Positions 19,299 through 41,800 of a stretch of 64,000 bases of DNA are shown piece by piece (positions within the stretch are counted from its first letter, which is position 1; every line of letters starts with the position of its first letter). The stretch covers positions 1 through 64,000 of the forward strand of contig JAPDFW010000101.1 in assembly GCA_028826165.1 (NCBI GenBank). Reading direction: 5' to 3'. The DNA is from Anaeramoeba ignava BMAN. Taxonomy: Eukaryota; Protista; Anaeramoebae. Position numbers and translations under genes: made by a program. The notes beneath the pieces were generated by a model. The model saw nothing but the letters and a program-made list of their open reading frames with translations, was not told where the DNA came from and searched no databases.

Positions 19299-22200
19299 AT
19301 GTCTGATTGGGTTGAGATAATAGAAACAGAAACGGAGGATGATTGGATTTCTTTACAAACTGATGCAGAACTTGAATTAGTTGAAAAAGATCATTTAGTT
19401 TCTCCACAACAACATTTTCAACCAAAACCACACGTTGAAAGACAACCTGAATTAAATTTTACAAAAAGTTTTCAAATGATGTTAAGTTTTCATGAAATGT
19501 CTCGTAAAATTTCTCAAGCAAAAAAAGATAAAAAACAAGGAAAAAAAATAAAAAAAGATGTTTTAAAGGATCTTAAAAAGGAGATTGAAATGGTATTTAT
19601 TTTCATCAAAAAATATTAAAAATTAATATTAAAATTAAAAATTAAATTCAAAATTAAAATTAAAATTAAAATTAAAATTTAAAATTAAAATTATAATTAA
19701 AATTAAAATTAAAATCAATAATTAAAATTAAAATTAAAATTAAAATTAAAATTAAAATTAAAATTAAAATTAAAATTAAAATTAAAATTAAAAATTAAAA
19801 ATTAAAATTAAAAATTAAAATTAAAATTAAAATTAAAATTAAAATTAAAATTAAAATTAAAAATTAAAATTAAAATTAAAATTTAAAATTGAAATTAAAA
19901 TTAAAAATTGAAATTAAAATAAAAATCAAAATTAAAATCAAAATTAAAATTAAATTTAAAATTTAAAATTAAAATTGAAATTAAAATTAAAATTAAAAAT
20001 CAAAATTAATATTAAAATTAAAATTAAAATTAAAATTAAAAATTAAAATTAAAATTAAAACTAAAATTAATAATTAAAATTAAAATTAAAATTAAAATTA
20101 AAATTAAAATTAAAATTAAAATTAAAATTAAAATTAAAACTAAAATTATAATTAAAATTAAAATTAAAATTAAAATTGAAATTAAAATTAAAATTGAAAT
20201 TAAAATTTAAATTGTTTTTTTTATAATAGAATCATCATCAAATTGAATTAGATGAATTATATGCATTTACAGGAACAGATCCAAATAGAGGATTAACTGA
20301 AGAACAAGCAAGAGAATCTTTAAGAGTTAATGGTCCTAATGCATTAAAACCTCCCAAACAAACACCTGAAATCATTAAATTTTTAAAACAAATGACTGGT
20401 GGATTTAGTTTATTGCTTCTTTTTGGTGGAATTTTATGTTTTATTGGTTATGGAGTTGATAAAAGCAACAAAGATTATGTAAAAGAAAAATGGAATGAAA
20501 ATAATAATAAATTAATTAATATTAATTTATTTAATTTTGAATTTTAATTAGTTTTATCTTGGAATTGTATTGGTTGCTGTTGTTCTTTTAACTGGAATAT
20601 TTAGTTATTATCAAGAACATAAAAGTGCAAAAATTATGGAAGGTTTTAAAAAACTAGTTCCTCAATTTTCTGTTGTAATTAGAGATGGAGAACAAAAAAC
20701 AATTGATGCAACACAAATTGTACCTGGAGATATTATTCTTATAAAATCTGGAGATAAAATACCTGCAGATATACGAATTATTGAAAGTGCAGATTTTCAA
20801 GTAAATATTTTGAAATTAAAATTATTTTTGAAATTAAAATTATTTTTGAAATTAAAATTATTTTTGAAATTAAAATTATTTTTGAAATTAAAAAATAAAA
20901 AAGGTTGATAACTCTTCTTTAACTGGTGAAAGTGATCCTCAATCAAGAACTCCAAAATGTACAAATGAAAATCCACTTGAAACTTCTAATCTTGCATTTT
21001 ATTCAACATTAGCAACACAAGGAAATGCTAAAGGAGTTGCAATTTTCACAGGAGATTCAACAGTTATAGGAAGAATTGCAGGATTAGCAGCAGCAACAAA
21101 AACAGAAGATACTCCAATTCGAATTGAAATTAGAAAATTTATCCGAATCATATCAATTGTTGCAATTATTCTTGGAGTTATTTTTTTCATTTTTGGAATT
21201 GTAATCAAATATGCATGGATTACAAACTTTGTTTTTGTAATTGGAATTATTGTTGCAAATGTACCTGAGGGTTTATTAGCAACAGTAACTGTGGCATTAA
21301 CTTTAACAGCAAATCGAATGTCAAAACGATCAGTTCTTGTGAAAAATCTTGAATCAGTTGAAACATTAGGATCAACATGTACAATCGCAAGTGATAAATG
21401 TCTTGGATTAAATACACCAGTAATGATGTATGATGGATCAATTAAAAATGTTCAAGAAATCAAACTTGGTGATAAACTTATGGGTGATGATAATACTCCA
21501 AGAAACATTCTTTCAACAACAAAAGGATTTGGACAAATGTATCGAATTATTCCTCAATCAGCAGATTCTTTTACAGCTAATTATTGTCATATTCTTTGTT
21601 TAAGATCTCATTTTCCAACAACAACAATTTTCGATACAAAAGAATCTTTTATTGTTCAATTTAATTTAAATCATAATATTTCTTATCAAGAATTTCCTTA
21701 TTTGATTAACAACAAAAATCAAGTTAAAGAACAAGTTGATAAATTTGTAAATTTTATTAAAAATCAAATCAAGCAGAAAAACAAGGATTTATTCGTTATG
21801 GAAGTATTGTTCATATTACTGTTGAAGATTTCTTGAAATTGAATTCTCAAATCAAAGATTCTTACAAACTTTATAAAGCAAATTTTGAGAATATTCTTAA
21901 ATCAAATCCAAAAGTTAATGTTGATCCTTATAGTTTGGGTGTTTGGATTGGAGCTAAAGAATTATCTAAAATTACAAAATTATCTCAAATTATTCCTAAA
22001 CAAATTCAATCACAACTTTCATTAAATTGGAATGCACCAGAAAATTTAATCACAACTTCAACTCAAGATTTCCTTAATAATTCAATTAATATGAATTTTG
22101 ATAATGGAATTCCTCAAGAATATCGATTAGATTCTCAAGAAAACCGAAGAAGAATTTTAACAGGAATTTTAGATTCAAAACAATTTTTATTATCAACAGA

Positions 22201-38870: not shown

Positions 38871-41800
38871 ATGTCAAAAAAAAATCAATCAAATTTTTAT
38901 ACAGGAATAAGTACTTGTACAAGAGATTCAGATGTAACAAATCAACCAAAAATAAAAAAGACAAGAAAAGCCAAGAAAAATATTAAAGAAAATATTAAAG
39001 AAAATATTAAAGAAAATAATAAAGAAAATAATAAAGAAAATAATAAAGAAAATAATAATGAAAATAATAAAGAAAATAACAAAGAAATTATTAATGAAAA
39101 ATTAAAAGAAAAATTTCAATATGGATTCCATAATTTAAAACTTAAACAAAATCATGAAACAAGACCAATTTGGTTAACAAATGATAGACATATTTTTCTT
39201 GAAGCATTTTCACCAGTTTATAAAGAAGCAAATGATTTTTTAATAACAATTTCTGATCCAATATCAAGACCTTATTTAATTCATGAATTCCATATCACTG
39301 CATATTCATTATATGCAGCAGTTTCTGTTGGATTGGAAACAGAAAATATTCTTGAAGTATTGGAAAAATTATCAAAAAATTATATTCCTTCTGAAGTTGC
39401 TGATTTTATTGTCAAATCAACTGAAAATTATGGAAAATTGAAATTAGTTTTGAAAAATCAAAAGTTTTTTCTTGAAACTGAATTTGAAGGTGTTTTGGAA
39501 AATTTAATGCAAGATGATGAATTGAGACAAACAGTTGTTTATCCAAAAGATGAAAATGAAAATACTGAAAATGAGCAAAATAAAAATTCTGTTGGATTTA
39601 ATCACCAAAATTTAATCAAAACATCAAGAATGAGAATTGCCAAAAAGGATATTTTTGGAAACAATTTCCAAGATGCTTTTAATCCAAAATATACTGAAAA
39701 AAACATTAATACTATTGATATAGATGAAGATGATGAGGATGATGATGATTCAATCATTAAAAATATTCGAAGTTTAGAAATCGAAACCAAAAAAGTTGAG
39801 AAAGTAAAAGAAAAATGTATTAATTTGGATTTTCCAGCTTTAGAAGAATATGATTTTCGAATTGATAATGCACCAAGTTTGAATATAAATTTGAGAGAAA
39901 CAACCCAAATTAGAAATTATCAAGAAAAATGTTTAAGTAAAATGTTTGGAAGAGGAAGAGCACGTTCAGGTAAAAAATACAATTGAATTAAGAATACCCA
40001 AAAAAATTTATATTATTCTTTTTTGATAAATAAGGAATTATTGTTCTTCCTTGTGGAGCTGGGAAATGCTTTGGATATAATACTCCAATTTTAATGTTTA
40101 ATGGGGAAATCAAAATGGTTCAAGATATTGAAATTAATGATCTTTTAATGGGAGATGATTCAAAACCAAGAAGAGTTCTTCAAACAGTTTCTGGTGAAGA
40201 ACAACTTTATAGAATTAATCAAGAAAATGGTGATTCTTATGTTGTTAATGAATCTCATATTTTATGTTTGAATTATAATGGAGTTAATGTTGATATTTCA
40301 ATGAAAGATTATTTTAGAAATTTACAAAAAGAAAAATTTAGAGGATATAAAGTTCCTGTTGATTTTGCTTTCCAAAATATTGAAGGTGTTGATCCTTATC
40401 TTTTTGGATATTTTTTCATGTTAATAAAACCTGGAATGATACAAAATGAAAAAATCAAAATCAAAATTGAAAATGAAAATTTTAGAAATCATTTCATTTC
40501 CAAATTAAAATATTCAAAAATAACTTTTATTGAAACAAATGAAGGAGATTTAATTTTGGAAATTGGGAATTTATTGTTTATTAAAGAAATTATTGAAAAT
40601 GATGGGAAAATGATAAATAAATATAAATGTAATTCAAGAAATATTCAAAAAGAAATTCTTGCAGGTATTTTAGATTGTGTTGGGAATTTAGATTCAAAAA
40701 ATCATGAATACTCAATATTTTTCAATAAAGAAAATTTAAATGAAAAAGAAAAAATGAATGATGTAATTTATATTTCTCGTTCACAAGGATATTATGTTTC
40801 AATTTTTAAGAATAAAATTACAATATCTGGGAAATTTATTGAAGATATTCCTGTTCAAAAATTAGAAATGAAAATGAAAATGAATTATAATGAAAATTTT
40901 GAAGGAAATGAAGAGAAATTAAATTTATTAACAAAAATAGAAGTTGAAAAATTAAAAGTGGATAAATATTATGGATTTTTAATTGATAGAAACCATAGAT
41001 TTTTATTAGGAGATTTTACAGTTACACATAATTCATTAGTTGGAATAGCAGCATCATGTACAATTAATAAAAGCACACTTGTTTGTTGTACATCTGGGTA
41101 AAATATTCAAATTCAAATTTCAAATTTCAATTCAAAATTTTAATATAAAATAATTTAATAAAAAAAAGAGTTGCTGTTGAACAATGGAAAAATCAATACA
41201 AACAATGGACAAATATATCAGATGATTCAATCGCTAGATTTACAGCAACAACAAAAGAATTATTCAAAACAGAAGCAGGAGTAATGATAACAACATATTC
41301 AATGATATCATTTCAAGGAAATCGCTCAGAAGATTCAAAAGAAATCATGCAAGAAATCCAAAACAAAGATTGGGGATTATTAGTATTGGATGAAGTGCAT
41401 GTTGTTCCAGCAGAAACATTTAGAAAAACAATATCAATTGCAAAATCACATGTTAAATTAGGATTAACAGCAACATTAGTAAGAGAAGATGAAAGAATAG
41501 CAGATTTGAATTTCTTGATTGGCCCAAAATTATATGAAGCAAATTGGCAAGATCTGCAAAGAAACGGATATATCGCTAAGGTTCAATGCGCAGAAGTTTG
41601 GTGTCCAATGACAACTAATTTTTTTAATGAATACTTAAAATCAGACAGTGTTCATCGTAAAATATTATTGTTTGTTATGAATCCCTCTAAGATTCAGGCT
41701 TGTGAATATTTGATAAGATATCATGAAAGTTGTGGTGATAAAATACTCATTTTTTCAGACAGTGTTTATGCTCTTCTGTTTTATTCGAAAAAACTAAATA

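Follow-up and report, generated by a model that had tools for sequence, protein, structure and literature searches.

The closest described systems are the inteins of Anaeramoeba ignava itself, for which Gallot-Lavallee et al. (2023; PMC10710043) reported 103 inteins, their non-allelic spread with intragenomic transfers, and P-loop homing in non-homologous proteins. That paper also describes a Prp8 with five inteins and a cluster that takes in 24 proteins together with nine from viruses, and splicing is shown for only three other Anaeramoeba inteins; the spread of the family over non-allelic sites in A. ignava is already published there. The two inteins considered here lie in the window, that is, the whole stretch of 64,000 nucleotides that was analysed, and are designated intein 1 (in a Na+/K+-ATPase) and intein 2 (in the helicase XPB). 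They share with the published set the genome, related non-allelic inteins, viral relatives and several Prp8 sites, and probably belong to its network cluster 15, together with Prp8 and viral inteins; the main text names neither XPB nor Na+/K+-ATPase and reports no loss of catalytic residues. VMA1/PI-SceI (PF05203, PF05204) shares with both inteins the Hint signature, class 1 termini and two LAGLIDADG positions, but is an active, site-specific element, whereas the window inteins lack the catalytic acids and occupy other hosts. Prokaryotic inteins (Novikova et al., PMC4760082) prefer the Walker A motif in unrelated ATPases, as does the present family; unlike them, intein 1 sits in the DKTGT motif of a HAD fold, not in a P-loop.

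The boundaries of both inteins are exact, the junctions being ASDK/C...THN/TGT in intein 1 and GAGK/C...THN/SL in intein 2 (a slash marks the insertion point throughout), and both have class 1 termini (Table 1). In-frame removal restores the host motif in each case, SDKTGT in the ATPase and GAGKSL in XPB, and the DKTG motif is uninterrupted in all of the related ATPases (120/120). The sequence-only reading had described the termini as VMA1-style; the two inteins match Hom_end_hint (PF05203, VMA1/PI-SceI-like) at 61.7 and 72.2 bits against a curated cut-off of 32.1. Since both inteins match this Pfam family as well as the PI-SceI and Prp8 intein structures, their relatedness is far beyond chance. 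The class 3 P-loop inteins of Anaeramoeba cluster 1, with their atypical N-terminal residue, were rejected as an assignment, as both window inteins start with Cys.

Table 1. Coordinates of the two inteins, their host genes and the frame breaks, counted from the first nucleotide of the window.
Feature	Positions	Strand	Evidence
Na+/K+-ATPase alpha subunit gene (P-type ATPase), host of intein 1, with spliceosomal introns	19299..25767	+	Pfam domains on transcriptome protein P0460; tblastn exon map; NCBI KAJ5069892.1
ASDK at the end of the N-extein; its Asp is the one phosphorylated in DKTGT	21387..21398	+	sequence
Intein 1, 373 aa, of class 1 (Cys1, His in block B, C-terminal His-Asn, Thr at +1); LAGLIDADG domain decayed; insert of about 55 aa after block B	21399..22516	+	
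Assembly artefact, one missing base that interrupts the reading frame of intein 1	21756..21766	+	extra base in two runs; P0460 reads through
Second frame break in the Na+/K+-ATPase gene	24591..24616	+	absent from transcriptome protein P0460
Single-copy gene for the helicase XPB/ERCC3, which carries intein 2 (approximate start)	38823..42351	+	Pfam Helicase_C_3, ERCC3_RAD25_C, ResIII
N-extein end, XPB Walker A motif LPCGAGK	40046..40066	+	sequence
Intein 2, 322 aa, of class 1 (Cys1, His in block B, C-terminal His-Asn, Ser at +1); LAGLIDADG domain decayed; block B not followed by an insert	40067..41032	+	

In the Nanopore-based assembly, intein 1 measures 1118 bases, one short of an open frame. 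An additional base is present at 21758/21759 in two public runs, which come from different samples, and one contig spans the intein 1 exon in a single piece, the exons on either side appearing as loose ends, which identifies it as spliced mRNA. The transcriptome protein P0460 contains all 373 residues of the intein and is likewise uninterrupted at the second break near 24600. The frame break is thus an assembly error and the spliced mRNA is intact, which rules out a pseudogene; no right-phase GT-AG intron splitting intein 1 was seen by eye either. The NCBI model at this gene, KAJ5069892.1, bridges the frame break with a patch, and its name makes no mention of an intein. Three further inteins of the genome (L037, L040, L044) show frame breaks that are probably assembly errors of the same kind.

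The host genes lie in an AT-rich genome of 42.8 Mb with spliceosomal introns. The aspartate of the DKTGT motif is the residue that becomes phosphorylated in P-type ATPases, and intein 1 interrupts this motif directly after the lysine. The ATPase exons were searched separately, with database proteins used in place of a joined spliced model. XPB gave one match in the whole genome and is present as a single copy. The ATPase gene contains long introns of simple AT-rich repeats (19620-20229 and 22769-23915), and the remaining neighbours (1199-17146 and 25981-37834) are ordinary genes for ankyrin-BTB, BEACH-WD40-FYVE, TBC RabGAP, RCC1-BTB and FG-GAP/fn3 proteins. On the minus strand at 42440-44530, an open reading frame matches the Pfam family RBP_receptor (STRA6-like), here in a protist.

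The two inteins had originally been compared by hand, and the counts of 35/68 (N-terminal) and 17/22 (C-terminal) identities proved exact and ungapped; likewise, both end in LGDFTVTHN, both follow an AAA codon, and their middles have diverged. However similar the termini, the pair is not special within its family. A terminal identity of at least 52/90 is reached by 45 of 325 pairs of inteins from the same genome, an ordinary level for the family, and the ending LGDFTVTHN occurs in 11/28 own inteins and 163/277 outside ones, so that it was rejected as a sign of sisterhood and is better described as the family consensus. The window inteins rank only 193rd and 226th of 304 for each other, and their mutual terminal identity is exceeded by 129 of the 277 outside inteins in comparison with intein 1 and by 187 in comparison with intein 2, counts which reflect the abundance of closer kin rather than a background rate, the outside set having been picked for similarity. 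As an example of intein spread to unrelated sites, the window pair is weak.

At the level of the family, the proposal that one intein lineage occupies non-allelic K/S and K/T sites is well founded, both in this genome and outside it, most of the sites being at the lysine of a Walker A motif. A genome search found at least 43 N-terminal relatives, of which 28 were extracted, about 15 weaker copies staying outside the sample. The insertion follows Lys in 22 of the 24 readable sites and Gly-Lys in 18 of them, and flanking motifs point to Lon, SMC, RecQ, MCM, ABC, dynein and GTPases as hosts. Five related matches lie in the Prp8 region of contig C98. Among the 277 outside inteins, 233 are located at GK/T or GK/S and none at DK/T, while the best matches of intein 2 are at AAA+ and other helicase sites. 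Related cluster representatives number 7093. Relatives are present on viral or virus-like contigs, in contexts resembling large DNA viruses, the viral nature of most of these contigs being judged from gene content and only L051 coming from a virus collection; scans of viral contigs with single inteins gave one distant match in one case and none in another. In two of the host genes of A. ignava, apparent spliceosomal introns end at the intein start or within a codon of it (L039:2042 and L046:1942, minus strand).

For the window pair itself the same proposal is unsupported, because the sister of intein 1 is a paralogous copy, the mutual ranks are low and a single origin of the genome copies is rejected. 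The nearest relative of intein 1 occupies the same DK/TGT site in the only other Na+/K+-ATPase gene found, on contig C55, and is identical to the intein of KAJ5078231.1 (protein P0402), an intein-containing Na+/K+-ATPase alpha precursor of A. ignava. Both Na+/K+-ATPase genes thus carry the intein. The two copies are identical at 219/373 residues, and at four-fold sites the intein (14/23) and the flanking exon (31/53) are equally diverged; since the synonymous divergence of the intein matches that of its exon, co-duplication with the host fits. Intein 1 and its paralog are united with 99-100 support in four trees, in which intein 2 is placed elsewhere, weakly, among outside sequences. The splicing-domain trees rest on about 114 columns and have little deep support, and near-final trees were used for some of the tree searches. 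Forcing all sampled genome copies into one clade is rejected (p = 0.0007), and the intein of TRIP13 is sister, with 99-100 support, to a replication-factor-C intein on a gene-dense virus-like contig, a placement that is a sign of separate import. Several entries of the family into the genome are favoured on these sequence comparisons.

Intragenomic movement had been suggested as the origin of the two window inteins, which the trees neither support nor reject. On this reading, an ancient intragenomic transfer would have linked both sites, or one resident donor supplied both, and the signal would since have eroded. AU tests tolerate a tree in which intein 2 is forced together with intein 1 and the paralog of the latter, with p values of 0.40 and 0.36 for the splicing domains and 0.93 at full length, the last obtained against a quick free search that was poor. 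In addition, the copies of this genome cluster more than shuffled labels do, transfers within A. ignava are on record (PMC10710043), and a clean recent case can be pointed to in Carpediemonas (see below). However, the sister relation of inteins 1 and 2 appears in none of the four free trees, the path length between them is 2.2 as against 1.2-1.5 to outside sequences, and intein 2 is without the insert that intein 1 has in common with many outside relatives, while the clustering of own copies may stem from long branches and AT-rich composition. We regard a transfer between the two sites as unlikely, though it survives better than the other alternatives.

A second alternative, in which each intein came from a same-site intein of another organism, appears still more improbable. 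Same-site inteins do exist in other P-type ATPases. A junction scan found a DK/TGT mini-intein in assembly PPCM01, where the host is a GC-rich Na+/K+-ATPase (L117:4305-4910, PPCM01002796.1), and a follow-up search found an intein at DK/TGT in a flippase of Dysnectes brevis (protein P0397). Junction pattern scans for DK/TGT inteins gave a single case in metagenomes; prokaryote genomes and viral contigs gave none. Inteins also occur in XPB-like helicases of virus-like contigs, and a clade of these with intein 2 is not rejected (p = 0.09). However, a single clade of all DK/TGT inteins is rejected (p = 0.0003), the best matches of intein 2 are at the other helicase and AAA+ sites already mentioned, and the L117 and Dysnectes inteins group with GK/T inteins of Carpediemonas and other eukaryotes (99.5/100), whose hosts are SRP, ABC and helicase proteins. 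For intein 1, the question whether it groups with same-site inteins elsewhere or with its window partner thus had a third outcome: it joins neither intein 2 in free trees nor the same-site inteins of other organisms. The L117/Dysnectes/Carpediemonas group, to which GC-rich composition may contribute, has in common an insertion of one residue close to the C-terminus. A second, related mini-intein of PPCM01 occupies the Walker A motif of an ABC protein (P0398), and the inteins of this assembly resemble those of fornicates. The simplest reading of these sequences is that look-alike DKT codons were reached twice, independently, from Walker A codons, once in Anaeramoeba and once in fornicates.

The Carpediemonas membranifera inteins L164:2596-3591 (KAG9391648.1) and L165:2647-3636 (KAG9394151.1) are 97.2% identical in DNA, although their hosts are unrelated, namely an SRP54-type GTPase (GVGK/S) and a SNF2 helicase (GLGK/T). 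The identity stops at the intein ends, the flanks being unrelated beyond GGCAAG, and the catalytic positions of the endonuclease are non-acidic. This pair would be a much cleaner case of non-allelic copying than the window pair, although conversion between two resident inteins or an assembly fault may also account for it; it makes recent non-allelic copying testable. In an incomplete coverage of the literature, no paper was found on natural P-type ATPase inteins, on Carpediemonas inteins or on the PPCM01 assembly. The independent fornicate DK/TGT invasion and the 97%-identical Carpediemonas inteins are possibly new.

With respect to present mobility, 144 of 189 full-length outside inteins retain the two catalytic acids of the endonuclease, whereas none of the 28 genome copies does. 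The block-E catalytic Asp is absent from all 28 (loci L001-L050), the surrounding motif often being kept; intein 1 has Ala and Lys in place of the acids of blocks C and E, and intein 2 has lost block C and has Val in block E. Neither window intein matches PF05204 or PF14528. Because none of the sampled copies retains both acids, these copies appear to be fossils rather than an active transposon, and the uniform loss in A. ignava is a side result of value. The intein site is also empty in the A. flamelloides ATPase that was retrieved. That the family still jumps to K/S and K/T sites in A. ignava like a transposon would suit its many sites in unrelated hosts, but is contradicted for the present and hardly credible given this loss, the restriction of close copies to duplicated host genes, and 14 empty DKTGT-type sites elsewhere in the genome, one of which (G000:C1:1623148-1623164, P-type ATPase-like) shares a 17-base stretch with the rejoined target sequence of intein 1.

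The explanation that we consider probable is that both are class 1 Hom_end_hint inteins and immobile remnants of separate old insertions, made after several entries of the family. A VMA1/PI-SceI-like family, found in great numbers at Walker A GK/T sites of giant-virus-like contigs and presumably of viral source, would have entered the A. ignava lineage several times. Its old placement at many P-loop codons may have proceeded by endonuclease cutting and repair across the short conserved DNA GGN AAR / WSN. The ATPase site comes close to this core (GAT AAA ACA as against GGT AAA ACA) and would have been hit once, before the Na+/K+-ATPase duplication. Self-splicing would restore the DKTGT motif of the ATPase and the GKS of XPB, and would be needed because there is only one XPB gene and neither Na+/K+-ATPase gene is free of the intein. 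Later loss of the catalytic residues would have rendered both inteins immobile, and they would have persisted because inexact removal would destroy the host enzyme. More tentatively, the family might be a short-motif element that reads Walker A codons, jumped twice, independently, to the DK/TGT codons of P-type ATPases (in Anaeramoeba and in Fornicata), was turned off wholesale once in a nucleus, and can still be copied between unrelated genes despite a dead endonuclease, through a nuclease that acts in trans or through conversion, as in the Carpediemonas pair; we consider this possible rather than likely. The arrival of inteins at new unrelated sites is an open question for which this family is good material. 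Among the metagenome proteins, several carry back-to-back inteins in one Walker A motif (P0004, P0007, P0012 and P0016; P0001, P0010, P0015, P0023 and P0030), which abut one another or have three residues, SGK or TGK, between them.
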